DNA of 64,000 nucleotides, from positions 55,118,001 to 55,182,000 of the forward strand of contig OZ365109.1 in NCBI GenBank assembly GCA_977030845.1, in the 5' to 3' direction. The position numbers were made by a program, and so were the translations under genes. Of this stretch, positions 5,613 through 62,259 are shown in pieces. The notes beneath the pieces are model-generated. The model was not told the origin of the DNA. It searched no databases and saw only the letters and a list, made by a program, of their open reading frames with translations. Each line of letters begins with the position of its first letter. Within the stretch, counting starts at the first letter, position 1. The DNA comes from Fimbriosthenelais zetlandica (taxonomy: Eukaryota).

Positions 5613-5646
5613 CCTCCTCTTTTCCAAAATCCTGGACCCGCTCCTG
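5613..5646 (-). repeat. Terminus of the same MITE-like repeat family
   Basis: Reverse complement caggagcgggtccaggattttggaaaagaggagg aligns with 61625-61660. Confidence 0.55.
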
Positions 5647-5756
5647 AAGTCCTGTCATGGAGACAAGGGCGGGGTTCATTCACATCTGTGAAGCTCATGA
5701 AGTTCAGGTTTCTTAGACAATCATGCTCTTTCACAGCCATTCATGCAGATGCTTAC

Positions 5757-5836
5757 ATCATGTGAGATGCTGACATCTGTGGAAATGTGGAAGCATCACA
5801 TCCATGAACGATCCGCTCCCTATCAAGTCTGCCCAT
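5757..5836 (-). CDS. Candidate first coding exon of unidentified minus-strand gene (MGRLDRERIVHGCDASTFPQMSASHM-I); exon 5888-5757
   Basis: Minus strand: tttctttcttttatttcaattcag acceptor before 5888, gat|gtaagc donor after 5757; ATG at 5836 is open to the donor in phase 2, matching the next exon. Confidence 0.4.
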
Positions 5837-7799: not shown

Positions 7800-7885
7800 G
7801 AGATGGAGAGAAAGAGAGAATTGGACATAGAGAGGGGGAGGGAGAGACAGACAGACAGAGAGAGACAGAGAGAGGGGTTGGGGGA
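7800..7885. repeat. GA/GACA-rich simple repeat
   Basis: agagatggagagaaagagaga...gagacagacagacagagagagacagagaga. Confidence 0.8.
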
Positions 7886-8160
7886 GTCTAATGAATGCTC
7901 ATAAGTCAGCCGGAGAAAGCCGCCTAATAATTTAATCAGGGGAAGAGAGTAGGTATAGGTAAATGAAGGCTTTGTCCTGTAGACTCAGTGCTGAAAGATG
8001 GAGGATTAGTTTCGTCTACTCTAGCTATCCAGGGAGACAGGTTAGCTTTGGATGTGACTCCAAAGTGGACCGTGACCCATGTTTTATTTATGAGGCCATG
8101 CACTGGAGGAGTCCCCCGCCAGGGTATTGGGAACTGGGCATTGATTTCCCTCCCATGTGA

Positions 8161-8187
8161 TGGTGGTGGTGGTAGTGGTGGTGGTGG
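8161..8187. repeat. (TGG)n microsatellite
   Basis: tggtggtggtggtagtggtggtggtgg. Confidence 0.85.
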
Positions 8188-13700: not shown

Positions 13701-14186
13701 ACTAAATGGGAAACTTCGCTGTTCCAAAGAAAGGACACTCTCTTGGGGAAGAGTGGTTTCTTTGTTAGTCATAAAATGCCAACTTGCAGTTTCAATGACT
13801 TGGAACAAGTTCCAATTTTGGATTTCACCCTGCAATAAGCCTGTCAGATTGCCTGTGATTGCCCTGTGATTGATTTAGTTACCTGATCGACCAAGGATGA
13901 AAATAATAATAGAAAAGGACAGATATTAATATGAACAGATAGAATCTCGTGTATGCATGCATAGGGGCGGGGGGTGGTGGTTTGGTAATATTTGATAGTC
14001 CCCATTCAAAAACAGTGCAATATATCGATCGTAAAACTCAAAGCATCATAATTATGAAGATCATCTATGAGGTTTTTCTCAGACATAGTAGGATAAAACA
14101 TTTATTATGCAATGATGTAGAGCCCAGATTTTTCCGTTTAGATTTTAATAGATGAATGATATTTTTCTTGCAGGGAGGTCGTTAAA

Positions 14187-22500: not shown

Positions 22501-25500
22501 CCTGTCTGCTTCCCCTTCTTCGCCCACTGGTGAAGTGAATCATAAATTCATACTTTCGGTGTCATTAACTTTGCCCTTCACAACTAATTTTCCTTTTTTC
22601 AGAGTTCATAAAAATTAATGAAGACCTTTCGTGTTTTACTAGGGCATAGAAAAACTAGATTCCTCTAAGAATCTATCATACCATAAAACGCTATAGCTTT
22701 GATTCTAGAGCCAGTGGAGTTTATGTTCAGCATATCTCGCTTAGAGCAAGTAGAGATTCCTATACTTCTAGTTTCATTGAATGTTTCATGATCAATTGTA
22801 GGAATTGAATAGCCGTGCAGTGAGAATACAGCCATCTGGAAATCAAGTTATATCAGACTTCTGACAGCACTGTCTGTCATTGTTAGACTATGATCTATCA
22901 TAACAGGTAGAGGTCGCACTGATAAGCTGCAGCTCTGCACGAACATGATTGAAAAGCTTCATTGTACACTCGCCCATTCACAAAGATATTACTTGAAACT
23001 TCGGAAAGGTCTTTTGCCAAAGCATAGCACGTGCAAAAGTCTCAAAGATATTTTCCGTATTATTATTACTGAACATTCTGGACTGATGCAAAATAGTTTG
23101 CTCTTTTTTTTTCAGTAAATTGTATCAAAGCTTTTGTTTGAAATATATTCAGTATAGGTTGCTGGGCCATTGAGTAAGCCTTGGTAGAAATGTGCGGTTA
23201 AAAACGAATTCTGTGGCATTATGAGCATTCAATACTTGTTTTGTAATATTCTGAAATAATTATAGAGATTTACCTCATAATAATTATTATAAAAATGATC
23301 CGTTTTACGAGTAAGAACAATATAATCCCATTAAACGCTAGGGAGTGCTATTATCTGAAACAATGTCATGGCTGGTAGGAATTGTTTAAATGGATTCCTC
23401 AGCTCCCACATGACTCCCTCAGGAAATATCAACAGTTGATTCTCAGAAGGGACTTCCCCAGGAGGTTTGAAAATAGCTAAGAATTAGCTCACACCCTTTT
23501 AGCATCGACCCAAGAGTTAGTTTTTATCCACAGGGACTGAATACATGGAACACATTTTATGAAGCTAATAATCTGAGCTAAGACCATCGTCATGCCAATT
23601 AGGGCAAGATAAAGATCTGATTTATGGAGAGAATCACATGGTAATGGAACGATAGAACAACTGAGATGATGCTTTGAAGTATTTAAGGTAGTCGATAGTG
23701 ATCAGCGAACGCAAAAATGACCTGTCGTTATATTAGGAAAAAAAAGGAAATATAAGATGTGAATATATGTTTTGAGTATAGTTTCTGAGAACTGGCTGCA
23801 GAAGTTGTAACATAAAAGTCCATACATTTATATTAAAGATGAAATGAAGAGTAGTTGGTGAAGCTTCTTTGGGAAGCAGTTCATACCAGACGATAGTGTT
23901 CCTTATTGACTGGACTTCCTCTAGCTCACTGCAAGAATTTCATCATCTAAGAGTTGCTGTTCTTAAGGTTGACTGCTGTGCAGAATGTGCAACACTGACC
24001 TCACCTTGAACCCTTAACCTTTTTGTGTCCGTAGCACGACCTGCTTGGCTGAACGGACAGAGAGATAGTGGGAAAAGCAATCCTGAGCTGGAGCATCATT
24101 TTAACTGGAGACTTGTTCCCTTCTGCCTTTTAACACCCTCCAAACTCTCTCGAGTATTCTTTATTAGCCCTGTTAAAGTAACTTTACTCCCTGCAGGCTT
24201 TTAAAATGAGTGAAATATAACGCAAAAACAATTGCAATATTGCAGGAATGTAAACTTAATGTTGCAGTTTGAGCTAAAGGGTCTTTTTAAGAATTTGCTT
24301 CCGGGAATATATTTTTACTGTTAATGATGGTTTGTTATACGAAGCTAGATGTGTCTTATATTCGTGCCACATTGTAATTCAGTTTACCCGTCTGTTCTAT
24401 CTTTCTACAGGCAGACATATTGTCCGTTACCCTTCAAATTTACAAAAAGAGAATATAAATTTAATAGATGAACCTTCAGGATGAATTTTGTGAGACAGGT
24501 TTTTATTTACTGATATTTACTGATGTAGATAAAATAATGAAAATGAAGAGAACCAAATATGTTTACCTGAATGCAGATGGACTCAGATATCACCATCTGC
24601 ATTACATATTATAATTATTATGGGAATTTAAAGGGTATAAATGACACTCGCTGCTCTTTATGAAAGGAATAATAATTAACAGAAGACCTGGCTAATCATA
24701 ACTATATCCTTTGGAAATCCATCCAATAGTAGCACACTGATGTGAACACTTGGCTAGTGTTATTTGCGATCAATTCAGGCAGATTCATTGGATTATGGTG
24801 GAAACATGAGAGTCTAACCATTGCCCACTTTGCCTATATCACATCAGTGGATCTGAATATAGCCTGGATAGATCATGAAAACTATGCATTACATAGCACC
24901 CTACCATTCCCTGTAGCATTGATAACAAGAATTCCCTGCCACTCGAGGTCGATTTGTCCCGCTGACTTTGCTTTAGTAGCACTACATCTCGTATACCTCT
25001 GACCGTGGTTTTCATAAACAATACTAAGCAAGTGGCAGCAGGCAATTGATCTAACCTTTCCACCAGCTTTAAGGATGGAGAATTCTATGTGATACTGGCA
25101 GGCAGTGGTTAACAGTGATCCTCTCAATAGCCTACCTTTCCATTGCCTGCAATTCTAAGTTTTTTCTTGTCACGATTGCAGTGCCGTCATCACCGGTGTT
25201 ATATCTGTTCATGGCTGGAGGATAGTTCATGAATTATCAATTACCACAATGAAGGCAGACAAAAAACCTTTGAATAAATTTTTATAGTAACTAAGATGGA
25301 CTTGCATAACGATGGTCAGGTCTAGTGTAAAAGGCCAGAGACATCTTTGGAGCTGATCTAATGAATCGGGCTCTACGAACCTCGTGATTGTATATATCTT
25401 GCATGGTCTTGTCTTCTTGCCTCCTCCCATATACACAGGAAGCAATTGAAAGCAAACAATAGATGACTTTTATTAATGTGGTTGTTGTCTTGACCTGAAG

Positions 25501-26043
25501 GAAGGAAGGCTGCTATGGAACAGGTACGTGGGAGATGATTGAGGCTTGCTGATTGTTATAGGTCGTTTCCCGGGCTGGGATGAGATGGGAGGTCTGCGTT
25601 GCTAGCTCCAAGCTACGATATTGGGGTGTAAATTCAAGGAGACTCTTCCAGATTCTTTCATGAGCTTGCCTCCAGGTTCAGACTTTTTTGTCTACGCACC
25701 TACTCAGATAAATGGATTTACACAAGGTGGGGGAGGTTCAGGTCCCCCTTATTGGCCTTCATATGGTATATATGATATCTCATTTAGCGCAATATTATGT
25801 TTTCGGTTATGATCTAGCTTGGAGGTCACCTCTCTGGTCACAGTGGATCTCCAGGTGAAATGACAGAATGCACCTTGATGAGATACACAGACTGTGAGCC
25901 GAATATTCTGCCATTGCCTTCTTCAAATCTGACATTTGGCTCCAAACGGAAATTAGGGGAGTTTCGCGAGAAAGAATGTACTAAGTAAGTTTCTGTGACC
26001 AAAAGAAAATAGGCCTACTTCGTTGCTCCCCCTGATCAAGATC

Positions 26044-26093: not shown

Positions 26094-29000
26094 TTGCTTC
26101 TAAGCAAAACGCTTCTTCTCTAAACAGGCTGCCCTTCAATGTAGCCTGCAATGTTTTGGATGCTAGTAGGTGTTGGTGATGCAGTTGAAGGGTGGAACAA
26201 GGGGCGATATTTACAAGTCCTTTATAATGCTGAGTTGGTTGTCAGAGTAAATGAGTATAATCTTAGTCTAGATAAGAAGTACTTCAAGCTGATGATTAAT
26301 AGATAACCTGTGATCTGCCTAGCATGAGAAACGTGAGAGTAGCCGACACAGCTTCAGTTGAAGAGCTCCTTTCTGTCTGCTGATGGCCATCCTCATGTCT
26401 TCTCATTGCTGGTTCTTCTGCCAAGGCCTGTCCTTGATAATTGGGCCTGATCAACCCCCCTTTGATGTCTGCACTCAGTAATCTGGCCCCTTCTCAAGGA
26501 AGTTATCATTCATTGCTTGCTAGTCCTCTGTACACCTCTCTACTTAGAGCTATTCCATATGACAATATATAAAGCCCTGTAATATTTATGATGGCCATGG
26601 ACCAATGAGGGCAAGGAGGCAATGTCCATGAATAATGTATGAAATCCTATTGGTCGTACCCTCTCATCTCCTCCCATAATTGGCTTTTTAACATGTATTA
26701 AATCAGCATCAATCTGGCATCCCTAAGCCTCTTAATCTCCAGAAAGGCCACTGGAATTATAGCGTGATTGCAATGTCGGCTTGGATTTCAATAATCATTT
26801 CCTATCCAAAATGACTGACCATTCTGGGGGTTAAGAAACAAATGCCAAGAGTTTTATTACAATCTACCTTGACATGAGATTGCCTCATCAGATATGCAAC
26901 ATAAATGTCTTGAGGATATATCTTGGTTCTTATAGAAGCGTGGTAAGGAGGAGTTATATTTCCATGGCCCTCACTGATAGAGTTTTGACAGCAATTCAAC
27001 CCGTGGATTTATATGGCATCCATGTTCATTATTCATAGGATGGGTACTTTCCCACGCTCCTCTACAAATGAGACTGGAGATGAAAAATGAATTAGAGCTG
27101 GGTCGTGAATGCTCTCTTATTGTGTGGCCGGGTGATAAGGCTGAGAAGGGTATAGACGACGAGGAGTGGGTGAGAAAGGAAAGCATGGACAATGTGACAG
27201 AGAACAGAGATAGAGGCATAGCCTAATACTTCATCTGACATTCTAATACAGTGGTTATTCTCATGATGGACAAGAGTATCTTGACGTCTATGCATGAGTT
27301 CATAACTGATTTTTATCTTTCCCTGGTAGACACAATCCGCTTACCGACTCGGGAAAGGCAGGAAGGTTTTATAGATAATATTTTAGCTTGCCAATCGATG
27401 CCCCATATTGGCTAGCATGGGTAGACTAAAATGATTGCTATACATATTGTGAAAGGCGGTTGCTCCATTCGGTGTTCTGTCGGGAAGATGTTGCTTGATT
27501 CCTTGTTGACTACACAGTTCTTATGTTGTGGGAATGCTATGCACTGTGATGCATGTACATATGCAGCAGTGGCCATGCATGATAAGTTGCACAAAAAAAT
27601 GTAATTAGCAGTCAGTGCAACCTTAATCCAATCTGCATACATTGTGCTCGTACTCGCATTACTATGCAAATGGGAATCCCATGGCTTTTATATAAACATA
27701 TAATTCCTAAAGATCTCATGAATACTTTATTCCCTTTATGTTTACAGTAATTCTTTAAGAACACTAGTCTTAAGGATACTGATTACTTTCTTGGAAATCA
27801 TTCTTTTTTTTTCAAATTCTCCAGAAAAAAACCATACACCAGTCAAAGGGTGAATGATTTCTGACTAACCCACCGTGTCATACACAAGGATGGAGCTTGT
27901 CAGAATGTATCTTGTATTGTCATGATGTATCATGCATTGCCAGAGGCAGAGATTGCCAGCTCGGTCTATGGTTGTAGTCTCAAGTCTGGATTACATGACT
28001 GGATGTCGTGACCAACTCCGCCTGAGCATCTGGCAGGTTGCCTGAAGATAACAGTAGCTCTCACCTTTTATATCTACACCCTTTCACCACCCTTATTCGC
28101 ATGCACTGATGGCGGCCCTGCCAATGAATGGGTTGGAGGCACTCAGGCTTTTTATATACAGGCTTGTACTGAGGAGGCCATCTCAGAGCATTTCTGCACC
28201 TCGGGGACTTACTTTTTACCTATTCCCCGTCCAAATATTTCATGCAAAAAACTGTAACATAGCGATAGCCTATACTTTTAGCTTAACACCTAATAAAACA
28301 GTGGCAGATTCCCCGGGTGTAGGAATATGTATATGTTTTAGGGATGGAATCTGGCCACCGAGAATCCCTTAATACTATCCCGTACCCAGTCTACTCTGGT
28401 GAAGCCTTCATAACAAGCATGAAAGTCGAGGCTATTAAGGTTGCTCATGCCTATAACTGAGTTGGCCCTAGTCTGCATATATACCCCTATATAGTATAAA
28501 GGCGCCTTCAGGTAGAGAGTAATGCTCCGATAAGCTCATTCTTATCACAGCCCAGGGCAGCTTGTAGCAGGCCCTGAAGGTGCTATGCTGGAAAATGACA
28601 TAGTCAGGAGCTGGCCGGAGCCAAGGGCTGTAGGTGCAGGGTGATGCATTATGAGCATATAGGTCGATCTATAGGCATGATATGATTGATAGAAGAATGA
28701 TATTGTACTAAAGCAAAAATTGATGGATTGTTTACGAGGATATTTTTCCAATGTCACTATGTAAACGAATGAATAGTGTTTTAACGCCATGCCAGCTACT
28801 AAGGCTACATAAATACATAAATGCCATGTATAGTAGATTGAAACAAAAATTATGCATGATGAATATATGGAAGACTGGAGTTCTCATCTGAAATTCAATA
28901 TTGTTCTGCAGAGGAGAACAATCAAAGGTCCATCGTACTCTTTCCAATCTCAATGAATTGATGCTCACGGATTCCACTTCCCCTGCCTTCCTCTGCAGGC

Positions 29001-47178: not shown

Positions 47179-47332
47179 CAGATGCCAGACACGCCTGAGT
47201 CATCAAAGAGTGGGATCAGTGACCTGCATCAACTTGTCGCTGACGATGACCCCCAACCCGATAAGAACCGTTCCAGCATTCCCATGGCTTCTTTTAATTT
47301 CATCAACAGCATCATAGGATCGGGAATAATAG
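47179..47332 (+). CDS. SLC38A11: SLC38A11 exon 2 (QMPDTPE...FNFINSIIGSGIIG, TM1)
   Basis: tacag|cag|ATG tandem acceptor, AG|gtcagt donor in phase 1; conserved TM1 motif. Confidence 0.95.
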
Positions 47333-47374
47333 GTCAGTTACTGCCTTGTGTTCACAATGATCTACTGTAGGGGT

Positions 47375-47582
47375 GGGACGCTGCATGGTTCAGTCGGCAG
47401 AGTGCTCGCTTTGAATGTGGGAGGTCCTGGTTTCAATTCCCTAAATATTGTTCAAATTTGCCAAACGTGGCACTTCCCCATCCAGTGCTGCTAACTGGGA
47501 TATCCAAGGTCAGCAACATCTCATACTACCTGTAGTATGAGGCATAGGCTAAGAACTATTGCTGCCCCACGAGAAGAGCGTT
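47375..47582 (+). mobile_element. tRNA-derived SINE copy
   Basis: tRNA-like head with A-box TGGTTCAGTCGG (47386-47397), anticodon-like stem-loop and degenerate B-box GGTTTCAATTCC (47429-47440), followed by an unrelated body with a hairpin at 47520-47541. The 3' end is approximate. Confidence 0.7.
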
Positions 47583-48701
47583 ACCGATTCTAATTCCTCT
47601 TCCTTCTGAGATGAAAACTGCTGATTGGTCGAGAAACTAATAAAATAATTCATAATCATTAAAGGTCTACTAAAAATAATGCTCATGTGTCATTGTCACA
47701 ATGTCTTTACAAAACTTAAGCAAGACAAAGAATCTATTAAAGAACAAACTGAGCATCATTCAAACATCCAAAACCGAGATAACACTTTTTTTCTTAGGCA
47801 TGTTCATTGACAGGAATTTCTGGTAGCAAAAATATCTAGACATTTTGAATAAGAATAATTTTTACAAAATGACATTCATTCATTTCCCACAGGAGGATAG
47901 CATAAAGAATGTAACCACTCTTGATCTGCTCTCATCGGCAGCAATGGTTCTTTTACATGCCCCTAGATGTAGACAGTGGGCGATATGGCTGACTTTCGAT
48001 ATCCCATTCTCATCTCATTCTCAACTATTTATAAGCTTAGGACTACACATACAAATGAACCAAGATTATGTATTTAATCGCGAGCCTCTCTAAGATAGTC
48101 AAGATAACAGCCTGAACCAGCGTTAAAAATTATATTTCATTTCAGCAAGCTTCATAGTGTCACTGTCTATTGTATTATTATGGTCCTATCCCATGCCTTT
48201 CATAATTAAAGTTTCACTGCCATTTTAATCAATACAGTCTCACATTCGTCTCTTTAAAGCTCCGGGGTAGGTTTTCCATGCATAAGCTCGGGAAGTAAAA
48301 CAATGCAATACTTCCCTGTGATAGCTCATTTGCCAGATTTAATTCAATCCGTATACACGTGTGCAAGTTTCCTCTTCCGTTCAACATTACTTCTTACTTC
48401 ATAATTACACTTTTAAAAGTAGGTTAGAAGTAACTATAAGATTCTCCTAAGAAGAGGGCCTATGGTTGAGCCAATTCGCGGGAGGGAGATTTATGGGGCC
48501 CTGTCCACAGTAAGTACCCAAAACCTTGGGCACAAAACGCTTCAAAATTGGTGTGATTTCGTTTGTCTAGTTTGAATCGTGCTTTATACCTTTATCAATA
48601 AAAACACCATGAAATAAATATTTTAGTAGGCCTAAACAACTCTAGATCTTTCTCCATCCAATTTGTAGGATTATACAAATGTTTTTTCCCTATATTTTTA
48701 G

Positions 48702-48776
48702 GCATGCCATTCGCCTTAAGAGAAGCCGGGTTTGGACTGGGTATATTACTAGTCATACTCGTTACCATAGTTACAG
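48702..48776 (+). CDS. SLC38A11: SLC38A11 exon 3 (GMPFALREAGFGLGILLVILVTIVT)
   Basis: ttttag acceptor, ag|gtgaga donor, phase 1 to 1; matches family LPY-MKQAGFPLGILLL segment. Confidence 0.95.
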
Positions 48777-51046
48777 GTGAGACGTTTTTTCATGCATAAT
48801 AATCATCCATCATCCGGGGCTCATCTATGTTCATTACATGGTTGGGAGGGCCTGCAGTGGACGCCTGGCTGGAGAAGGGGATTAGTGATTTAAATCAAAG
48901 AGCACCTGCTCGTCTCTTGTACTACATGTAGTCCTCAGTTATTAGTAACTGATGGGTGTGACTGATCAGTGACTACAGTGTGACTAATCATCGATTCTTG
49001 ACACTGACTGATCACCTGGCTGATATTTCCATGTATTTAAAAACCCTGACTTAATTATTATCTTTGGTATCAAATGGTTTATAACTCCACTACTGTTCGG
49101 TTTAATAAACATAGGATTTTTGTTATACCTTCGATTGCATTCTTTGGGAATCCTGGACTGATTTTCGACAAAACCAGGAGAATTGTCTCACATGTGATGT
49201 GGCATAAATAGGAGCGTGATTGCATGATATGCTAAGCGAAGGAAAGTGAGGTGTTGGCACGATTCTCGCTTGTTAGTGAACTGAAGGATGATTAAGTGTC
49301 CTCTAATAGAGCGCCAACACCTTGGGGATGTAATTCCATCCTATGGAGACTTGTCTCCTATTTCATGTTATAACAAGAATCTGTCTCTTCCCAAACAGTT
49401 CCTAAATGCAATATCTTAGTATAGTGTGTCTACATTTAAAGGACTGCCACCATTTGTTCGACTATCAGTTAAGGGTGTTGGGTTGCAGCACACTAATTAA
49501 GAAGGTTTAACATATAGGTTTAGCCTATGACATCACCTTCCTTATACTGGAGGATAGAGACTGATATTTCTGTGAAACCCAGCAACATCTTTTATTGGGA
49601 AGCGTATAGCATGGGCGTATATATATCACAAGGCTAAATGTGCAAATTCTTCCTGAAGGGAGTATCTGTACAATGTTACTGTCACAAAGAAGCTAGATCT
49701 AGCTTCTCTAATGACAAACCTTTTACTACAGGCTAAGAGCCGTCTTATAACACATAGTAAGAAGCATAGCTTTAGATCTACTGACGACCTCTTCTTGACT
49801 CATCTCACCTCAAACCCCTACGGCCTGAACAATCCCCTCCCTAAGTGATTTCTTCCTATTGCAACAAATAGAATCCTTTTAGTCAGAAATTACTTTAGAT
49901 CATCAAAGACTTTTTCTTTTCCCTAGAATTGCACAGATATTCACTTGTGGCCAAGTCATTAAAAGGCGGTGCCCCTCTGAAGGAGGAGGTTTTCAGTTGG
50001 AACTTACCTGCCTTTGTTCGTCCACTTGGAAGTCGTCCCTGATTCAACATCTCTTTGATTCCACCTTGGATTTTTATCTTTCTCAAGGGGAACCATCCAA
50101 TCTTCATCCTTATGTCTCCTATTATTTTCGGTTGAATTGCCATAATTTCCATGGTTTGTGGTCTATAACAAAAAAGAATTAAAAAAGACATTATTCTTCA
50201 GGTCTATATACACTCTCTTATTGACACTTTATTTTTTTTTATTCATTATTATAATTCTTTATACTTGGGGATCGAAAATGGCATGTGCTTGATTTCTGAT
50301 ATAAGAAATTAGTCAGATTTTATAGTGGAATTGATGCCCAAATGATTTCCCCGATGATTTGGAACTAATTTCAAATACACTCGCCAGTCTTAATGACTTT
50401 AACTGAGAAATTGTCCAACTTATAAGCTGTCACAAACACAGGGACTTAAATGGATTTAGTGGATTCATTTTGGAAGTTGCTGGTTATCTTTTTCATCCCA
50501 TCAGTTGGAGAAATATTAGTATTTTTATGCATGAAGACCAACAGCAGAAGCCGTAAATCTGTTTTAATGGATGATTTTTAAATTCTCGAGTATGCCTAAT
50601 AAAGTCAAGGGAAATCAAATGCAGTAGGATCATATTTCACATAGTTCCTCAAAGGGTCATTAAATATCTTTCAAGTGAAGTTTTGGGCCTCAGAATGCAA
50701 TAAAATCCCTCTTTCTTCTACGATATAATTACTGGAGAATTTGACACTTGTTCGTTGAGCACATCTCTTAACATGAGGTTATTGCCTTTTAGTGATGAAG
50801 TGTTATGATTAAATTTCTTCTCCTGCACCAAAGAGTATTTAACAAGATAACTGGAAGGCAGTGACACTGAAAATTGGGTCCAGTTTCAAATAGATTGGCT
50901 CCAACCTTGTTGAGATTTTACTCAGTCTCCTTCAGACTGTACCAATCAATGTACTGTCTCAATCGGGTCTACAGTTACTGTAGCCAGTCTCAACCAGACT
51001 GTAGACCGTGTCCGGCAGACTGCGCCCAGTTTCTGTAAGACCCACG

Positions 51047-51204
51047 CAGACTGCATCCACTCTTATTTTGACTGCATCCACTCTCTTTCCGACTGCCTCC
51101 ACTCGTCTCCCCACTTACCACAGATTGTACCCAGTCTGCTGCAGACTGCCTCCATCCTCCTGCAGACTGCATCCACCCTCCTGCAGACTCCCTCCACTCT
51201 CCTG
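51047..51204. repeat. Minisatellite with 21-nt unit (CAGACTGCATCCACCCTCCTG)
   Basis: About 7 diverged units with one 11-nt interruption (51110-51120). Confidence 0.85.
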
Positions 51205-51609
51205 TCTAATTGTAAATAAGGTCTAATCCCCGATTGGCCGAATAGACCGATTCTCTGTCCCCTGGAGATCGACTTGTAGATGGATTCCACAATGCAAGAA
51301 AACTTCCGTCCCCTCATGCAAAATGGGGTCCTTCCCCAGGTAGATTGGCACTTGGTGGCCGCCTACAGTCTTTTTGTTGTAGATCAGGGACTGTAGGACA
51401 TGGGTAAAAGGCTTATGATGGTATGAGGGATTTGAAATATTAGAGCAGGAACCTGAGGAGAGAGTCCTTAAAGCTAACGACATCCTGTCAGGATATTTCA
51501 AATGAGGTATTTATATGATTAAGCTACATGTGTAGGCCGACATCCATAATAGACGTTGCATCCACCGTACCTTTAAACAAGATCTTTAAAGTGTTTCCCA
51601 TTCTTTCAG

Positions 51610-51668
51610 ACTACTCACTGGTGCTTCTCATACATGGAGGAGAAATGACTAACACCAATACTTACCAG
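51610..51668 (+). CDS. SLC38A11: SLC38A11 exon 4 (DYSLVLLIHGGEMTNTNTYQ)
   Basis: ttctttcag acceptor, cag|gtaaag donor, phase 1 to 0. Confidence 0.95.
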
Positions 51669-54600
51669 GTAAAGTAATCGACTTTAATCGTTTTTAATTC
51701 CATTTTGGTATTTTTTCGGGCGCAGAAGTGTATTCTAAGGTGGGCGCTCAAAAATACAGATGAATGGTTATTACTTATAACAAGAAACGCCCATACGAAC
51801 CTAAAGTACATTTCTGATTGGCATTGACTATTATGTGAGAAGGACAAGAGAGAAAACAAGGATTCTACCCAAAAGGACTAAGCTAATATTTTAGTGGGTC
51901 GGGTTACTTTGGGGAGTCTACTATAATCATGATGTTTTGGTGGCGTTGTCTGCCGCGGTAATGGTAATGTGTTAACAAGGTCTTTACAGAAGCTGAGCTG
52001 ACTTTTTACATGCATGTCTTCACATCTCAGCTTTAGGCCAGGGCATATATGTATTCCCAGTAAATCCTTTAGTCTCTTTTGTTCTATGTGATATTTGTAT
52101 GTGTATAATAAATTTGATGGTATAATTTGTTGCTTCACCGTGATATAATCTCACTGTTGACTCCTGGTCATTGAGTCTAGGATGGGTTCTAGCTATTGAT
52201 GTGGGAGTCATTCTAACTTTTAATGAGAGTAAATATACATATTGAGCTGTATGAGGCTTATGTATAATGCTTTGGGACTTCCTAGAGCTCAAGGGATTTA
52301 TGGGATCGATGGAATTGTGACAAGTACATATAGATGAGTCACTTCAGCAGAAAGCAGTCTTTTATTGGATTGAGACCAAATGTTGCTTGCTTGAAAACGA
52401 ACTCTCAAGAATTCTCCTTTTGTGAATTTGATGTTTCGAGAGATTGAAAATCTATCTCTGTAAAAATGCAAAAGTAGTTTTAAGATGAAGTGGGGACATG
52501 GCATTACCACAGTACGCTGAGCAAATGATTGGGAGCTTACCGTCTGAGAGCCCAGTGAAGCAAAGAGTAATGCTTATCTAAATGTCTGGCCAGAAATGGG
52601 AGACATTCCGGTCTGGACCAGCGGGGCCACTGCTTGTCAGTATATGGGCCTTTGACTGAGCCTGCTATTGGCTACCGTTTGTCATGTGACAAGAATGCCA
52701 CGTGACGTGAGCCTGAAAGGGTGTGCCGGGTAGTTTACCGGAATCGATCAATGTGCCATCTGGTAGGGTTTGCATGGGGTGGTGAAATTGGAATGTGATA
52801 TATCACAGAGCTTCTAAAAGGAACTTGACACCGGGCCCTCACTGATGGCGTCTCTGTCTAATAGCAACCACGTCACTTACTAACAAAGCCTGCGGATCAA
52901 AATACACAGCTCACGATCTTTCATCACAATTCATAGCCATTTTAACGAAAGTTCCAAAATGACCAAATTAATCTCTCCACTTGGCAATTAAAAAAGTTTA
53001 CCAAGAATCTTCAGTGTTAACTTGTGTGATTGACATGATGAAAGTATATATAGCATGGCGCCAAATGTAAAGGTCATGACTGGGAATATATTGGCTCGAT
53101 TGCTTCACGTTCAACAAAGCTGCCACACACCTTCAGGTGATATGGGTCCAAAATACCACAGTAGCTGTCATCATCCGACACATTGTCTTGCACACGGTGT
53201 CAAGATTTTTAACGTCGTTATCGTTATGAGGTGACAGATATGTCGCCTGCCTAACAACAGCCTGGCAGTAACTGTCAAGATGACTTCTCATTATATGTCA
53301 AAACAAAAGGTCATTACGTCATGATCAGCTAAAAACGTCTCCTATACCTGGGAATTATTTCCAGCAATAACATTGATTGAGACAGGTCCGTCTCTGGGTT
53401 CTACAATAGATATCAACATTACTAATGCGAGTATGTTCTGAAAAATATTTATCAGTTTGAAGTATGCTTGAGTGGGCTCTACATCCAACGCCAAATTTCA
53501 GTTTATATGCATTGAAAAGATTTTACTTTTCTTGTAATGTCAAACGCCTATTGGAGCACTAAGAGCAATGTTCGCTTCTCCTTCTATTGCTGATGAGGAT
53601 TGAATATCACATTAGAATTGTATCACTAGGGGGAGATTACTTCATGTCCTTTCAAGCAAGGACATCGCATGTCTCATGTTCCTTTATCTCAATTTTACGG
53701 TGTCAGATTTTCACGTTAGATTCACACAGCAGTTGGAAATCAATTCTTTCCTGGCTTCGGTTTACACCAAATGAGAACATCCCCGAATTTTTTACCCATT
53801 ACAATGTACACAAACTGGCCTTGTCAACCTTATACATTCCCATTTACCCCACATCACCCAAGGCAATACCAGTTCTGAAATGTCTTTAGTTGGCATGGGA
53901 ATAAACCAGCCCACACCTTGTTTAAGAACTGTCAAGTCCCATTGAGTGGCAATGTATCATCCATTAGTTTATAATTCGTTCTGATATGTACTTCATTATC
54001 CAACCCGCAGTTCTTTCTTTATACCATGCCCTTTATATCTACAGTAGATAGAATACTTTGGGAAATTCACTTATATTAATGCAAGGTTTTTATGTATGTT
54101 CAAATAGACTGACTGGTCTTGTGTTTAATTAAATATCAATTCCCTTACACGTTGTCTATGGAATTGCCAAACAAACTTCTTCGTTAGCAATGCAGTTCTA
54201 TCTTCCTACAGAGGAAATTGCAGATAATGCTATCGAATGGGCAGAGGTAGTTTCTTCTATAGTATCTGGCACGTACATGTACAGATGTTTTGTAAAGTCA
54301 CATATTGCTAGTATCAGTGTCTTGGTTCATGAAAAGATACATGGTGGGGCATATCCATTGATGGCGCGTGGATGAACCAACCATTCAATTATGTGCAAAT
54401 TGCTTACCTAAGTCAGAATGTGGTATGAGAATGAGGGGGCACTTCCCATTTTTCTTCATAAAGGTGTAAGGCTGCCTACTCTTGACGACCTGGTGATGGG
54501 CTTCCTCTCCGAAACCATCTCCGGTGGGTTATTGCTTAATCACGTCTCGGGATTATTTTAAACTTTTAGTAATTGCTATCTTACAGCAACCTATACACCC

Positions 54601-55423
54601 AGAGGGCCTTGTAAAATATGTTATTGCTCGTCCTGTCATGTTGCAGATATGAATATGCCAGATGAGAGTGACAATTGTTGGGTGTACTCGCTAAAGCAGC
54701 CCTCATAGATGATTTGGAATAATAAACTAGATATATATTTGTTGTAAAATCTCCTAAAGTTCCCCAGAGGATCACTTGACTGTAGATGAATAGCCTGGTG
54801 CACCTTGCCCATGGATTAAGGGATATGGACCCAGGGACTGTTAATGACCCCATTGAGGATGAGGCGCCCACCACACTGCTCTACATTCACCCATGTCGTC
54901 CTCTATAAGAGAATCCTTTTTTCATTTCCGGCAAGGTTAAAGGTCCGATCGGCTATTGTAAATCTTTATGGGTCTTCTCCACTGGAGTAAAATTTCTACA
55001 AGCTGGTCTTGAAAAGTTTCTATATATAAGGCCTACACACAACAAACTAGTCTCTCATGTATAATTGAGTTTATTCACACAAAGAAGTATTCAGAATCTG
55101 ACATAGAGGGTCCAGCCATAGATATAGAATGTATCTAGGTTTATGGACAAACTACTGGGGACCATATAACACCTGTTAATGGCTTCGTTTTGTCTGCAGT
55201 TGATTGGAGTCAATCTGCAGTGTGGGGCCAATCTGCAAGGGACGGTGGCCTGGCTGGAGACTGCACTAAAAGTGTAGCAGACAAGACTTACAGCAGTCTT
55301 CTTGATGTGGACTCCCATTAGCACCTCATATATATAAGGCGCTAATGGCTCATTGTTTTTTGCTTCTGTTCGTCATCCAGTAAACAAAATTCAATATTAC
55401 CGGTACATCTTTTTCTTTTTTAG

Positions 55424-55499
55424 GATGTGATGAGAGCTGCTTTTGGCCGTCCTGGCTTTATCATTCTAACTGTGATGCAGTTCCTCTATCCAATGATAG
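55424..55499 (+). CDS. SLC38A11: SLC38A11 exon 5 (DVMRAAFGRPGFIILTVMQFLYPMI)
   Basis: Long T-tract-tag acceptor, ag|gtaaca donor, phase 0 to 1. Confidence 0.95.
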
Positions 55500-55960
55500 G
55501 TAACAGTATTTTACAATTCTGTTAAACTAAAGCAATTCTAATTATAGACATTAAACTATATAACTAAAGTTTTCCTCAGATTAATTATAATCTTTTTTTA
55601 TTGTCTAATGACATATTGAACTGGCGTACAAACGCTTAGAATTTCCATCCTTCAGGAATTTACACTAATAATTTTTTAGGATAAATTAGAATGGAAGCGC
55701 CGCTCCACCAAAAATATCTCCATCAGCTACACGATCAATAAATGTCTACCGTTCTATTGTCTGGGAGACATCTCCTTTTGCTCAAGGAATGCAATTAGAA
55801 TTTCTGGATTTGACTCTCTCTTGTTCTTATCAGTTTAATATTATTTCCAGCCTAGGGCCTTGCACAGACATAATGATAATATTACAGATCTCCACAATCG
55901 ATCATCTTAAGTTATGTTCTATACCTGATTTAATTCACTTTTGTCGTCAAACTCTTTCAG

Positions 55961-56026
55961 CTATGATTAGTTACAATGTGATCATCGGTGATACCATTAC
56001 AAAAATAGTCCTGCGGGTTGGAGGTG
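55961..56026 (+). CDS. SLC38A11: SLC38A11 exon 6 (AMISYNVIIGDTITKIVLRVGG)
   Basis: ctctttcag acceptor, g|gtgagt donor, phase 1 to 1. Confidence 0.95.
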
Positions 56027-56243
56027 GTGAGTAGACCTAAAATTATAGCCTATATTTTTTCTGTTTAAAGTTTCAAGATGCTCTGAAAATGTTTTGTATA
56101 GGCCTCTATAACGTTGAAATTGTATTGGTCCTTATAAATGCTGGTTAAGACAGCAAGTAAGCTGGAATGGTTGAAAACAGAGATGTCCCAGAACAAATAA
56201 GATAAAATATTACAAAAAAATCTATTTTTTATCTACTTAACAG

Positions 56244-56353
56244 AATCCATCAAACACACCGTCATCGCAAGTCGTCAGTTTGTCATCATTATGACTACCA
56301 TCATTATTACTCTACCACTATCACTCTATAAAGACATCACTAAACTCGGGAAG
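56244..56353 (+). CDS. SLC38A11: SLC38A11 exon 7 (ESIKHTVIASRQFVIIMTTIIITLPLSLYKDITKLGK)
   Basis: taacag acceptor, aag|gtaagc donor, phase 1 to 0. Confidence 0.95.
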
Positions 56354-57037
56354 GTAAGCTTAACATTCATTTTTCGTTTCTGAGACACTTAAGTTTGTAA
56401 CATTGTAACATACATCAAACAAACTGCCATGTGTCTTTAGACTCTGGATTCTATTTGCCAAGAGCCAGTGAGTTAGGCACTCTGGGAGACTGGGCCACAT
56501 ATAGATAATATATCTGCATGGGATTTGTCCCAGTTTGCATAGGCCTCACACGACATTCAGGAGATTGTTCCTTGTCTGCAGGAGACTGGACTAGATCTGC
56601 AGGGGGCGGGCCCAGTTTGTAGGGAATAGTACCTGGTCACTTATAAACCGGTGACTAAATCAGATCTTGCAGTTATCTTGTCAGGTTGACTTAGTCAGCA
56701 GAGCCCCTTGATGTAGACAGATCAACATAAGTCTAAAAGCTTTTCCTTTCCAACTACTTCCTCACATAGAGCAGGTTGGCCCTTCCTCATTAAAAATTTA
56801 CCAGAACCATGTGTATGACCAAACCCAGCATCCTGACTCTCCAAGTGATGTTAGTTCCTAAGTCTAGTGTATATTGAACTGGTAGATTGCGGGGTTCGAA
56901 TTACATGTAGTATGACTGCTTACACCATATCAAAAAAGTATATAATTATATTTTTACACAATGTTTTGTATGAGGCATGTGGAGCATAGTTGGACCTTGC
57001 TCTCTGACAAAGGCTCATGTACTGACTTTTCTTCCAG

Positions 57038-57111
57038 GTGTCGCTAGTGTCGATAGTGTTTGTAGTTTTCATTGTGGCTGTAATGATAGGGAAAGGTTTC
57101 GCCATGCCAGT
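57038..57111 (+). CDS. SLC38A11: SLC38A11 exon 8A (VSLVSIVFVVFIVAVMIGKGFAMP-V, TM5; canonical-like variant)
   Basis: tactgac branch-like motif, ttttcttccag acceptor, gt|gtaaga donor, 74 nt, phase 0 to 2; resembles vertebrate KVSLIS segment. Confidence 0.9.
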
Positions 57112-57969
57112 GTAAGAATTAAACATCTACGAATAATTAACATTTTATTGATTAATTGTTTGTTGTTTCTTCCTATAACCATCTCCATACGTGCTGATAA
57201 TTATTGCCATATTTTTCTAATATCGAGTATTACCCTCTAGCTTCTATATATATGCCTAATTATTGAGACCTTATTATAGTAGCCTACCTTTGGTTGTTGT
57301 GCGTATTTCTATTTTTAATCTCATTATTTTTACTTCTTTTTAATATTTGATTTTTATATATTCTCCCATTTTAAAGCCCGACGTGTAACCAACAGGAAAC
57401 TGAAAGAAAAGTCCTTTAATAGCAAACGTTGATAGTTAGACCGGTCTTCAAATACATGCGTCGAATATTTCCACTAAATCTTCCAAAAACTAATCTTGCA
57501 TGATTATATTCCTAATGCCGGGCCCACACAGAGGCGATTTGCTCAAGGGATGCAGAGCGATAGGATATTTCTAGTCACAACCAATGCTTGTTATTTGAAC
57601 AGTCCTTTACAACTAGCTAAGGCTAACCACTAACAAAATTACAAGCTAAAGATTATGCAAACCCATGAGTGGAAAATGAACCTATAATATATATTTTTTT
57701 GAAGTTTGCTTTATGTTTATTTCATTTATTTGGAACCGTATAGTTCATCTTTTGAGTAAAAACTTACTGGCTCTTCCATGACATCTTGCATGCTATAAAG
57801 GTCGAATACACGTATCTTTCGTCTGACCCTTCCCGCGATCCTTGAACCAGCATTTGTCTCCTTTCCCCTTTTTACATGGCGATGTTGTGCCTTCAATGTG
57901 ATGTCAGCTCTGACTAACGAGTGGCCTCTCAATCTCTTGCTATTTTATCCCCCTTTTATATCCTTTCAG

Positions 57970-58043
57970 TATGCATGCGTATCAATTTTATTAGTCTTGG
58001 CCATCGTCGCCCAGATGATGGTGCGCCGCTTCACACTGACTGT
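57970..58043 (+). CDS. SLC38A11: SLC38A11 exon 8B (YACVSILLVLAIVAQMMVRRFTLT-V), duplicated mutually exclusive TM5 exon
   Basis: ctgactaac branch motif, long pyrimidine tract ending tcctttcag, gt|gtaagt donor; same 74-nt length and phases as 8A; 10 of 25 residues identical to 8A. Confidence 0.85.
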
Positions 58044-58861
58044 GTAAGTCTTCCAATTCAGACTATAGTGAATCATTTTAGACTACTTTAATACTCAAAA
58101 GTGCGGAGAATGTAAAGAAAAAATTTGGAATTGTCGGTAAATTTAGCAGAACAAGTTTTAGAAATTGTTTGGTTGTTGTGAATAATTCCTAAAGAATTCC
58201 CATGCAGTAAATTTTTCATTCTGGCACAACATTGATGCTGTCGGGTGTAATTTCAGAATTTTAGTCATAACATTGTGACGATAAATTAGAAGTGTTAAAT
58301 TCAAATATGTAACTGATAATTAAATGGTATTTGATAGAGTAGAGCTACCAAGATGGGAATATTAAACATATATCCAAAAAATGATTAAAAAAGATGATTG
58401 GAAATATTTCTTTATGAAATGTATCATATATATTTTTTAATGTTTATGTTAGCTACCTTACATAACTAGTCAGGAAGCGCACATTTCAAGGCACAACTTA
58501 ATTTAAATTTGATTATTTTCAATCTTTTGTGCTTTATTGCTAATTCTTATATATTATAAATTGCTAATGCTTATATAATATAAATCTATGACCTAAAACT
58601 AGGATTATTGATCAACTCATACTAAATGTTGAATACGCCATGCGAGTCACTTATGAGTTTCTCTGCATAATTACCAAAAGCTTCTTCATCAAAGCTTATA
58701 ATGTAGAATGGGATTAGTCATAAATTTGGTTATAAATGTCATTATTTGGGCAATATCTTAAATAAATTGGATTAGTCCTTTCTGTCTGATTGTCTTAATT
58801 AAAATTTTCAAATTAATATTTTTTATTGTTTTTTATGAGTTTTATCTCATTATTCTCACAG

Positions 58862-58932
58862 ACCACAGACAGATGATGCCTGGCAGTTTGCCAACACTGG
58901 AGTAACAAAAGCTATAGGAATCATGGCCTTTG
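58862..58932 (+). CDS. SLC38A11: SLC38A11 exon 9 (PQTDDAWQFANTGVTKAIGIMAF)
   Basis: ttctcacag acceptor, g|gtaaga donor, phase 2 to 1. Confidence 0.95.
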
Positions 58933-59512
58933 GTAAGACCTGCATTTAATGTAATTTGCATATTCATGTTATTGGTGGGAAAGGTTGTCATGTTAACCTA
59001 GGTGGAGCAGCTCAAGAGAGAAACAAAATTGTATGGCTTTCTATGCAGTTTTATTTCCTCATCTCGAAAATGCCATTGCATGTACAACGCACATCAATTT
59101 TTTGAAAGCTGGATGTCCAACATTGACATTCCCGTCTAGTATTGAAGGTTCATTAGAAGCTACAGTTATTTGGTGGCAAATTTAGTACATATCATCTAAC
59201 TGATTTCCAACTTGAAATACGAAAACACAATATCTTTTTCTGAGAGTCAGCCATTTTATGTTAAAGGGTGCTCTGTTTTATCAGTAAATTGGCTTTGTTG
59301 CATATAATATTATATAATTTATTCAACCGTTAAATACCTTCGAACCCCATGTAGCAAAAAGATATATCGCGATGCCTAACTATTGGCATTCCAGTAACAA
59401 GAACTCATGTGGTCTCATGACATCTTAACCATATACATGCTTTTGGAACATCAATCTTGATCATATTTGATGCAGTAAGACTAATTTAATGAATTAACCT
59501 CTTCCCCCACAG

Positions 59513-59674
59513 CCTACATGTGCCATCATAACTCCTTCCTGATCTACGACTCACTGGAGGAGCCCACGGAGAAACGCTGGGGGATCGTGACACACGTCAG
59601 CGTCCTGTTTGCCATGTTCTGTACCCTGGTCCTGGGCATCACTGGCTACGCCACATTCACTGGCTTTACTCAAG
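59513..59674 (+). CDS. SLC38A11: SLC38A11 exon 10 (AYMCHHNSFLIYDSLEEPTEKRW...GYATFTGFTQ)
   Basis: cttcccccacag acceptor, ag|gtctgt donor, phase 1 to 1; highly conserved motif. Confidence 0.97.
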
Positions 59675-61006
59675 GTCTGTCATTTCTATTATTTTGGCGA
59701 AAATTTTTATAAAAATGCCATTTTGTCCCAATTAGAATAATCTTGAAAGTTTATGCTTTCGAACAGTAATGGTTGCATTGAAGTTGTGACCAAACTGTTT
59801 TGCTGTGTTGTTAATCTTATGAATGGGATTATATACACATCATTATCAAATGTTCTAAGAGGAATAAAATGATGATGAATTTTTAAAATATTTATCCTTC
59901 CGTTAATATTCGCAGGCTTTTGATCATTTTATTGTCACTAAAGTATAGGAAGTCGGCCGACAGCAGGTGGAATTTAGACTTAAGGGCTCTCAACAGAATG
60001 CCTTCTTGAAAGGGAATAGCTTCTGTGTCCTCATGACCTTGTAGTTGGATACACGGGATTTGAACAGGATCCATTAACAAAACAGCAGCCAGAGCAAGGT
60101 CTCAGTATAATTGCAAAATACATCTATAATTAGAGATCAGATCAAGCATCAGGCTTGTACAGGCCCTACACACCAAGCCTTTAGCTAGAGTGATTACCCC
60201 AAAGGGATCACAAACCTTCAGACAGGAGAAATTAACCAATCTCCTCAGGATTGGCCGAGACTGAAAGAGATGGGCCAGAAATCCCACAGCAGATCAAAAT
60301 CCTTCCGGAGATTTGATTTAGTCTCCTACAGAAAAATCCCTGAGGAGATATTCATACATGCAGTCAGGTGACTTTCAAATATTTTCCAAAACCTGGCTGA
60401 TGTATAGTGTTTTACAGATCTGCTCAAAATATCAAATATTTGTTGATAATTCTTGTGTGTCCAGGCCAGGTATGGGTCTGTAGGCCTAGTCTGCAGGGGA
60501 TTAGGATCTCATTTGCTCGTGTCTCTAGAGAGAAAGCATTCTGCTGAGGATCATTGCGATCTCCACCCGACTTGTCTCCTTGGTGTGAACAGGCTTTAAT
60601 ATATCTCTTGGGAAATTATCCCCGTCCTGACTACGAGGTAAAGTACTAGGTGGGAGGTGGTGCCGGATCGTGTCCTTTTAGTGGGCTGCCTGAGCGAACT
60701 GGATGGGTCATGCAATGGCCGTGGTCACTGCTGGTCAGCCAATCCAACCCACAAGCTTATCTTATCATATGGTGCCATGTATACGTATAAAGGGCATCCG
60801 TAGTAAATGTAGTTGCTCATGACCAAGGTAAAAAAAATATGGGGCGGGCGAGCGGGCGAAGAAAACTTGAAAAACTTATGAAAAGGAATTTTTGAGGAGA
60901 CATGATGCAACTTTGTTTGATTTTCTTAAGAGATCCCCTTTTTCTGTCTTGCCTGCCTGTCTTTAGCAGTGACTTAAGAATGGATTCTTTCTTTATTGTT
61001 GTACAG

Positions 61007-61119
61007 GTGACGTTTTAGAGAACTACTGCCATAAGGATGATTTGATGAATGTGGCACGCGTTCTGTTTGCTGGTACTATTATGCTCACCTACCCTATAGA
61101 ATGCTTCGTCGCTAGACAG
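61007..61119 (+). CDS. SLC38A11: SLC38A11 exon 11 (GDVLENYCHKDDLMNVARVLFAGTIMLTYPIECFVARQ)
   Basis: gtacag acceptor, cag|gtaaat donor, phase 1 to 0. Confidence 0.97.
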
Positions 61120-61364
61120 GTAAATACATGTATTACAGATTCAATTTATCCACTAACTTCAATGATTCAGATCATAATAGATGGACGCATGAAGAAGAGG
61201 ATATATTCTTAAAGAACTTCATTTCAAGTCCTCACTAGAGTGCAAAAAAATCATTTCTTCAAGCTAGTTTATGCCATGATGAATTAGAATATCACAGAGA
61301 TTGATACCTATAATAATGGAATAGCGTATGATTGATTAACCTCATCTTTTCCCCCCGCAAACAG

Positions 61365-61502
61365 GTGATTGAAAATGCAGTTTTTGCCTTCAAGCAGCCA
61401 CCACCATTATGGCGCCACGTCCTTATCACATTCATTATAACCTTCATCTCTGTTATCGTCTCCATGGCAACAGATTGCCTCGGTATTGTTCTGGAACTGA
61501 AC
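61365..61502 (+). CDS. SLC38A11: SLC38A11 exon 12 (VIENAVFAFKQPPPLWRHVLITF...DCLGIVLELN)
   Basis: aaacag acceptor, aac|gtaagt donor, phase 0 to 0. Confidence 0.97.
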
Positions 61503-61624
61503 GTAAGTCTCATGACATATACATATATTGATATATTGTTTGTTCTCTAAGGGCTCTCAAGATAGCTAAATGTGGTATAGAATTTTACTTGTCTATACAG
61601 GTCTGTTGTTTAGAATGTTTATAA

Positions 61625-61772
61625 CAGGGGCACATCCATGATTTTGGAAAGGGTGGGGGTCTTTCTCCAAGAAAATCAAAGGTATTTTGAAAGGACGTAT
61701 TCACTGTAAGCAAGAATTTATAGGATGCACATTGTGCTTGGATAATAATTCCAAATCCTGGATCCCATCCCT
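61625..61772. mobile_element. MITE-like element with imperfect terminal inverted repeats (CAGGGGC..ATCCA.GATTTTGG family)
   Basis: Left end caggggcacatccatgattttggaaagg; right end ccaaatcctggatcccatccct; related termini at 5613-5646 and 44854-44867. Confidence 0.55.
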
Positions 61773-61935
61773 AGATCCCTAGATCCATGCTAAATCTCAC
61801 AGATGGCCCTTTTGAGTTTTTTCAGGTTTTCATTTTTTTCCAAAATAGAGGCCTACCTCCATCAAACAGTTGTGAATCTTTGAGAATGTTGTTAATTGAG
61901 GTTTGTATTAAGGAGAGAGTAATGTTCTATTTCAG

Positions 61936-62259
61936 GGTGTTGTAAATGCTGCTCCCCTAGCTTACATATTCCCCGCACTTTGTGTCATGAAACTTCAGAA
62001 TGAACGTCTGCTCAGCTGGAAAAACGTCCCCTGTATTCTCACTGCCACCTTCGGCCTCCTGGTGGCCATCGTCGGATTCATCATGGTCGTCATAGAAATA
62101 GCCAATGGTGTTCACTGTTCGCATGGAAAAGAACTCCCATACTGCCTCTCCACTGACAACCAATCAGAACCCTACGTTGGGCCCCAAGACGTTATGACCC
62201 TAGCAACACAGTCCAGCGTTTTGGCCAACTATTCCTATACAGGAGTAGGTAAAACGTAA
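61936..62259 (+). CDS. SLC38A11: SLC38A11 terminal coding exon 13 (GVVNAAPLAYIFPALCVMKL...CSHGKELPYC...GVGKT*)
   Basis: ttctatttcag acceptor; open to TAA at 62257-62259; conserved CxHGxExxYC motif and N-glycosylation sequons (NQS, NYS). Confidence 0.97.
   Translation, partial: GVVNAAPLAYIFPALCVMKLQNERLLSWKNVPCILTATFGLLVAIVGFIMVVIEIANGVHCSHGKELPYCLSTDNQSEPYVGPQDVMTLATQSSVLANYSYTGVGKT

Follow-up and report, generated by a model that had tools for sequence, protein, structure and literature searches.

Tandem exons predicted to encode two versions of transmembrane helix 5 in an SLC38A11 orthologue of an annelid-like animal

Introduction

The SLC7A2 products CAT-2A and CAT-2B arise from mutually exclusive use of exons 8 and 7, and the choice between these exons alters both transport capacity and affinity (PMC12714141). 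Mutually exclusive exons are also found in coq-2 (exons 6a and 6e) and mrp-1 in helminths, annelids, and molluscs (PMC7434440). In coq-2, which encodes a prenyltransferase, there is a demonstrated metabolic switch between ubiquinone and rhodoquinone (PMC7434440).

Two forms of SLC38A11, which we call A type and B type, are already in the public annotation of Owenia and Lineus. In Owenia fusiformis, CAH1788297.1 is A type and CAH1788298.1 is B type, with identical flanks. In the RefSeq annotation of Lineus longissimus, isoform X2 (XP_064647636.1) is A type and isoforms X1, X3, and X4 (XP_064647635.1, XP_064647637.1, and XP_064647638.1) are B type. The difference between the deposited isoforms in both species is confined to the segment encoded by the exon for transmembrane helix 5 (TM5). 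As is usual in annotation practice, these isoforms are assumed to have a transcript basis. Full-text literature searches on mutually exclusive exons in SLC38 and in annelids turned up no account of this A/B pair. To our knowledge, SLC38A11 is an orphan transporter with no established substrate or role. Here we describe a gene with both candidate TM5 exons in a 64-kb stretch of DNA, referred to below as the window.

Results

The window contains a predicted SLC38A11 orthologue

Judged by its sequence, the gene on the + strand at 47.2-62.3 kb of the window is an SLC38A11 orthologue from an annelid-like animal. Its 12 coding exons, from 47182 to 62259, were set by tblastn with homologues and a frame-consistent splice model, and the spliced model encodes a 471-aa product with 11 predicted helices and a LeuT/APC fold. 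The features of the gene, with the evidence for each, are as follows:

47182..47332, + strand: coding exon 1, with the ATG at 47182 and the TM1 motif FNFINSIIGSGIIG (Aa_trans positions 2-23; spliced 471-aa open frame 78% identical to P0188)
48702..48776, + strand: coding exon 2 (tblastn with homologues, splice model)
51610..51668, + strand: coding exon 3 (tblastn, splice model)
55424..55499, + strand: coding exon 4 (tblastn, splice model)
55961..56023, + strand: coding exon 5, with the donor maybe at 56026 instead, adding 1 aa (tblastn, splice model, donor sequence read)
56244..56353, + strand: upstream constitutive exon, TM4 and cytosolic loop (...PLSLYKDITKLGK), ending in phase 0 (sequence; conserved in all homologues)
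57038..57111, + strand: alternative exon A, 74 nt, candidate TM5 of A type (VSL...IGKGF) (sequence; orthologues in the ERZ24900295 relative, Lamellibrachia, L011, Owenia, Lineus, and Tubulanus; A clade 92/87)
57112..57969, + strand: A-B intron, 858 nt (sequence; no third exon copy)
57970..58043, + strand: alternative exon B, 74 nt, candidate TM5 of B type (xA..S......R) (sequence; top segment for the B profile; inside the starred B and mollusc clade, on a long branch)
58862..58932, + strand: downstream constitutive exon, outer loop and start of TM6, PQTDDAWQFANTGVTKAIGIMAF (sequence, splice model)
59513..59674, + strand: coding exon, TM6b-TM7, AYMCHHNSF... (Aa_trans 205-258, E 4.7e-07; tblastn)
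61007..61119, + strand: coding exon (Pfam Aa_trans, tblastn, splice model)
61365..61502, + strand: coding exon (tblastn, splice model)
61936..62259, + strand: last coding exon including the stop codon (Pfam Aa_trans, HMMER, tblastn, splice model)

The exon translations match Pfam Aa_trans (PF01490) collinearly at domain positions 2-23, 205-258, 263-298, and 353-409, and this domain is present in all full-length relatives. The 24-aa exons A and B gave no usable match when searched singly against Pfam. When the last exon was used as a HMMER query, both fragments and full-length relatives were recovered. In word-index protein searches, with at least 120 matches listed, nearly all of the functionally named matches listed were "putative sodium-coupled neutral amino acid transporter 11". 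The matches named SLC38A11 span molluscs, annelids, nemerteans, brachiopods, arthropods, echinoderms, amphioxus, and vertebrates, and the relatives so named have 60-78% identity among the matches listed. Among full-length relatives, two JGI transcript products come closest, with 78% (P0188) and 76% identity, followed by siboglinid annelids with 71-74%.

The exon two upstream of the A/B pair has tandem donor candidates, GGAG/GTG/GTGAGT, at 56023 and 56026 (56020-56031). Either donor keeps the frame, and the products would be one glycine apart.

Exons A and B form a homologous pair linked by the reading frame

The upstream constitutive exon ends at 56353 in phase 0 (CTC GGG AAG/gtaagc). Exon A (57038-57111) reads ttttcttccag/GTGTCG...GCCAGT/gtaaga, with tactgacttttcttccag as the preceding sequence, and encodes the peptide VSLVSIVFVVFIVAVMIGKGFAMP followed by a split V. 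Exon B (57970-58043) reads tatatcctttcag/TATGCA...GACTGT/gtaagt and encodes YACVSILLVLAIVAQMMVRRFTLT, also followed by a split V. Its acceptor is preceded by a long pyrimidine tract (...cccccttttatatcctttcag). Both exons run from phase 0 to phase 2, and each has its own AG acceptor and GTAAG donor. The initial annotation had described two 74-nt exons with the same phases and GT/gtaag ends, and every one of its statements about the sequence agreed with what we read. The 10 identical residues of 25 that it reported correspond to 9 shared residues of 24 plus the split V.

Because 74 is not divisible by 3, the frame survives in an mRNA only if it includes one exon of the pair and not the other. 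In spliced models, A or B alone leads to a 471-aa open frame. It had been claimed that the frame breaks with both exons or with neither, and the models reproduced this: with A and B together translation ends in ...PVMHAYQFY-stop, about 9 codons on, and with both skipped it ends in ...GKTTDR-stop, after 5 codons.

Exons A and B are identical at 37 of 74 nucleotides (12, 18, and 5 of 24 at codon positions 1, 2, and 3), and seven of the nine residues common to both are encoded by differing synonymous codons. Since hydrophobic codons share a T at the second position, part of the identity there is due to that T, and the argument from synonymous codons is weak when taken alone. Purifying selection on both copies had been proposed from these codons. 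The codon differences are as described; the inference is weaker than was stated since B evolves several times faster than A and lies on a long branch.

We compared the two peptides with 31,045 stop-free 24-aa segments from both strands of the window. A and B were reciprocal best matches with a BLOSUM62 score of 35, and the next best segments, with scores of 30-31, were other hydrophobic stretches. A score of 35 was reached by 0 of 100,000 shuffles of B. In the 2.5 kb that separate the flanking exons (56354-58861), A and B were the only candidates with an AG acceptor, 74 nt, a GT donor, and an open frame. A B-type profile was then made from eight B-type exons of other species, leaving this genome out. 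It placed 57970 first of the 31,045 segments and in the exact register, with a score of 28.9 compared with 20.9 for exon A and 16.5 for the best background segment. This ranking is the strongest sequence test of B and is independent of this genome. By these measures A and B are a tandem pair of homologous exons whose exclusive use would be enforced by the frame. The choice of a single TM5 exon most likely yields two transporters that differ only in TM5, with the variant ends KVS...IGKGFAMP from A and KYA...MVRRFTLT from B.

The alternative exons are placed in TM5

Exon A or B provides residues 179-203 of 471, comprising most of TM5 and the first outer-loop residues before the broken TM6. The structure was tested on an AlphaFold model of P0188, the product that is 78% identical (pLDDT 86, pTM 0.82). 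In this model the alternative exon corresponds to residues 218-242, which lie within the fifth helix (H212-237) and extend a little beyond its end; a broken helix pair (H256-267/H270-278) directly follows the exon segment. Such a broken helix pair marks TM6 of LeuT-fold carriers. The top Foldseek matches of the model were SLC38A9 (7kgv and 6c08), followed by AUX1/LAX3 and APC transporters. Because the exon lies in the fifth helix just before the broken TM6, the initial assignment to TM5 of the SLC38/APC LeuT fold holds, and the modelled structure has the alternative exon encoding most of TM5.

Both exons are found in four other genomes

It had been suggested that related genomes be checked for both peptides. 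Orthologous A/B pairs were found in a relative from a metagenome assembly (ERZ24900295), Owenia, Lineus, and Tubulanus:

ERZ24900295 relative, exon A: 1377-1450 of the reverse-complemented locus (135-kb contig ctg4643l; L002/L003), 74 nt, VSLLAIVFIIFIIGVMIAKGFTMD
ERZ24900295 relative, exon B: 7879-7952 of the reverse-complemented locus, 74 nt, ttcttctag/.../gtaagact, WAIISLLLILFLMIVVIIRMNTYQ
Owenia (L005): exon A 9888-9967, 80 nt; exon B 13865-13938, 74 nt
Lineus (L006): exon A 25931-26010, 80 nt; exon B 26791-26873, 83 nt
Tubulanus (L007): exon A 24474-24553, 80 nt, annotated; exon B 25922-26007, 86 nt, intact, unannotated

The order is upstream exon, A, B, and downstream exon in all five genomes, and every A or B length leaves a remainder of 2 when divided by 3. 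The ERZ24900295 relative is about 75% identical to this gene in the other exons, and its A and B outrank the other six of eight candidates with AG, 74 nt, GT, and an open frame in 10.7 kb. The introns flanking its exon B (L003 reverse complement 1451-7878 and 7953-10897; L002:1-960) are 6.4 and 2.9 kb long and rich in (TA)n/(TATA)n-like microsatellites, and gene callers rendered these as IYIYIY "proteins". In Tubulanus polymorphus (OZ123235.1), the B-type exon at L007:25922-26007, CAFLSIILNIVIMGVVIFRLIIPFTPSR, reads gttgcag/.../gtaagatt, lies between the annotated exon A and the next exon, and is missing from the gene's single RefSeq protein. No third exon copy turned up in free intron scans across all loci.

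Lamellibrachia (L004) has exon A only, and scans of its introns showed no recognisable remnant of B. In Lamellibrachia satsuma, the intron at the place where B is expected (L004:14050-14610) contains a tandem repeat that translates as VHVNKHE units. A metagenome scan with P0188 returned one further relative (L011), along with a contig (L012) whose sequence begins too far downstream. The locus of the further relative is compact, with exon A followed by a 330-nt intron, and B was not found in it. These sequences point to loss of B in siboglinids and in the L011 lineage, so B is dispensable in some annelids. Lingula has one TM5 exon, introns of about 300 nt, and no second copy. Two 471-aa SLC38A11 products of Lingula anatina (P0190 and P0191) come from different scaffolds and have very few residue differences (I versus V, in the loop after TM5); these are probably haplotigs or a very recent duplicate.

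Among molluscs, all 52 products with a readable segment have the W-A (B-like) form only; this protein-level set contains numerous RefSeq isoforms as well as transcript-derived Logan proteins, and it spans oysters, mussels, clams, gastropods, and cephalopods. From these sequences the single mollusc exon is classed as B type. Siboglinid products are of A type only, as are P0188, P0189, and P0359, the only close transcripts found. The statement in the initial annotation that vertebrates have one exon here matched the deposited vertebrate, amphioxus, echinoderm, and arthropod products, which show one form; the Ptychodera segment was unreadable with the pattern used and is outside this count.

Exon B has diverged more than exon A

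In a matrix of pairwise scores, A exons were tight (mean 67) and B exons loose (mean 30). Exon B of this genome scored no more than 38 against every other exon, whereas the B of the ERZ24900295 relative is near the mollusc form, with scores of 64-78. The end branch of B in this genome is 1.26 compared with a median of 0.29, about 4 times as long. Relative to the ERZ24900295 relative, the identical bases at codon positions 1, 2, and 3 are 16, 21, and 8 of 24 for A and 5, 15, and 8 for B. Pairs of A exons had dN values of 0.2-0.5 and pairs of B exons 0.7-1.0, and B changes 3-4 times faster than A. A dN/dS comparison had been suggested; dN was obtained, and dS was saturated in most pairs and gave no meaningful ratio, so selection on B cannot be quantified.

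The frame of exon B is still open and its length exactly 74 nt; its acceptor is an AG behind a strong pyrimidine tract, and its donor, GTAAGT, is optimal. Compared with the B of the ERZ24900295 relative, 17 of 24 positions are hydrophobic in both, and the family residues A2, S5, and R19 are kept. We consider it quite probable from its sequence that B is used in this species.

The exon duplication most likely predates the annelid-nemertean split

A maximum-likelihood tree was made from 26 exon peptides; with only 24 columns it is rough. It contained a single A clade (support 92/87) and a starred clade (96/89) that united the B exon of this genome with the B of the ERZ24900295 relative, both nemertean B exons, and all molluscs. 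Owenia B was unplaced at the base of the tree, yet was not excluded from the clade of B exons and molluscs (p-AU 0.26). Forcing annelid A and B together made the tree 19.9 log-likelihood units worse (p-AU 0.014), and a duplication within annelids only was thus rejected. Given the A clade, the clade of B exons and molluscs, and this rejection, the duplication is most likely older than the annelid-nemertean split.

A fuller history is, in our judgement, evenly balanced between right and wrong. In it, the A/B pair would predate the split of annelids, nemerteans, and molluscs and would have been sorted by lineage, with molluscs fixing B, siboglinids and another annelid fixing A, and Owenia, nemerteans, and the present lineage keeping both. 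Exon B in this lineage, changing 3-4 times faster than A, may have a new role. If this history is correct, it constitutes a natural experiment in which two TM5 designs, each sufficient alone, have been kept together for more than 500 million years in some phyla.

Exclusivity is not explained by intron length or spliceosome type

Steric hindrance is excluded because the A-B intron is 858 nt long here, and it is at least 780 nt in the other species, compared with a donor-to-branch-point limit of about 50-60 nt. Incompatibility of U2 and U12 splice sites was also rejected: the donors GTAAGC, GTAAGA, GTAAGT, and GTAAGA, the AG acceptors, and the pyrimidine tracts are all U2-type, with no /[AG]TATCCTT. 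The tract and acceptor of exon A (57024-57037) are complementary at 13 of 14 positions to 57400-57413, 362 nt downstream in the A-B intron. No counterpart of this complement was found in the four other species. In all five species the duplex energies of the acceptor regions were within the range of 30 mononucleotide shuffles, and inverted repeats were not beyond chance.

Discussion

We propose that tandem exon duplication placed A and B between two constitutive exons and that regulated choice of splice sites most likely includes one of them in each mRNA. Nonsense-mediated decay would clear transcripts that contain both exons or neither, which meet a stop within 9 and 5 codons, respectively. 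The two versions of TM5 may tune gating or kinetics. Overall, the reading that we favour, with a good measure of confidence, is that the A/B pair is old, that B is spliced in this species, that two transporters with variant TM5 are made, and that splicing regulators together with nonsense-mediated decay would ensure exclusivity.

Several alternatives bear on whether B contributes a protein segment in this species. It is unlikely, in our estimate, that B is a relic of a real ancestral pair, now unspliced or included at the level of noise and drifting, leaving the A isoform only, as in siboglinids. Its long branch, its poor similarity to every other B exon, the identity of only 5 of 24 first codon positions with the B of the ERZ24900295 relative, the independent losses in Lamellibrachia and the L011 relative, and the A type of the only close transcripts (P0188, P0189, and P0359) would all fit a relic. 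However, with synonymous sites saturated, B has kept its open frame, its length of exactly 74 nt, its tract, its AG, and its GTAAGT, along with helix-like hydrophobicity (17 of 24), A2, S5, and R19, and no other segment of the 64 kb fits the profile of B exons from other species as well; lineages that lost B have no recognisable remnant of it. We give still less credence to B being mainly a poison exon, whose regulated inclusion together with A would cause a premature stop, nonsense-mediated decay, and lower transporter output rather than a second protein. The stop that is met about 9 codons on when A and B are both included would serve this purpose; an open, helix-like frame in register with A would not be needed for it, and isoforms of Owenia and Lineus, like mollusc products, use the orthologous B as their only TM5 exon. 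The probability that the open frame of B and its splice-like dinucleotides are due to chance is negligible. Candidates with AG, 74 nt, GT, and an open frame are not rare in AT-rich introns, as the eight in 10.7 kb of the ERZ24900295 relative's locus illustrate, but this reading is refuted by the first rank of B among 31,045 segments against an independent profile, by its reciprocal best match with A at a score that 0 of 100,000 shuffles reached, and by orthologues at the same position in four other genomes.

A further alternative concerns origin. The annelid and nemertean pairs could be independent duplications that converged on two helix solutions, with the mollusc form as the ancestral single exon. 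The alignment has only 24 columns, Owenia B falls outgroup-like in the unresolved base of the tree, and for the mutually exclusive exons of mrp-1 in helminths, annelids, and molluscs an independent origin has been reported (cited in PMC7434440). Nevertheless, annelid and nemertean A exons share a derived ending of IGKGF type and form one clade (92/87), the tree joining annelid A and B is 19.9 log-likelihood units worse (p-AU 0.014), and A precedes B in all five genomes. We regard independent origin as improbable and favour a single, older duplication.

That two phyla have retained the pair and other lineages have settled on one form or the other suggests that the function of the transporter can be tuned through TM5. 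The pair also provides natural variants for uptake and gating assays, either as A and B in one backbone or as the B-only form of molluscs and the A-only form of siboglinids. For annotation, single-isoform models can miss the second exon, as in the Tubulanus RefSeq model that lacks a genomically intact B. For the study of exon evolution, the locus offers a dated case in which an exon was duplicated in tandem and one or the other copy was later lost in different lineages. In practical terms the finding carries moderate weight, since invertebrate transporters and channels commonly have mutually exclusive exons for membrane helices.

Among the known systems, SLC7A2 is similar in that one amino-acid transporter gene produces two proteins through exclusive homologous exons, and it also encodes a transporter with the APC/LeuT fold. 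Its alternative segment is a loop and helix region near TM8-9 rather than TM5. SLC7A2 also differs in belonging to the SLC7 family, in being vertebrate, and in having a known functional effect, whereas the SLC38A11 pair is described here from sequence.

The exons of coq-2 and mrp-1 resemble the pair described here in being tandem exons of equal length that remodel a membrane-embedded core, in occurring in annelids and molluscs and not in vertebrates, and in that one copy resembles a pan-eukaryotic form (PMC7434440). The phyletic pattern of the SLC38A11 pair is different, with a single form in molluscs. The single-exon SLC38A11 of vertebrates, amphioxus, echinoderms, arthropods, priapulids, and Lingula has the orthologous segment, with K or R at exon position 19 and a small residue at position 2, and differs in having one form in all isoforms examined.

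The SLC38A11 isoforms of Owenia and Lineus involve the same gene, the same position (between ...LSK and the P.T..W.FAN exon), the same order of A then B, and lengths with the same remainder of 2. Their A types form a clade with exon A of this genome, and Lineus B groups with its exon B. They differ in length, at 80/74 and 80/83 nt compared with 74/74 here, and the exon B described here is far more diverged.
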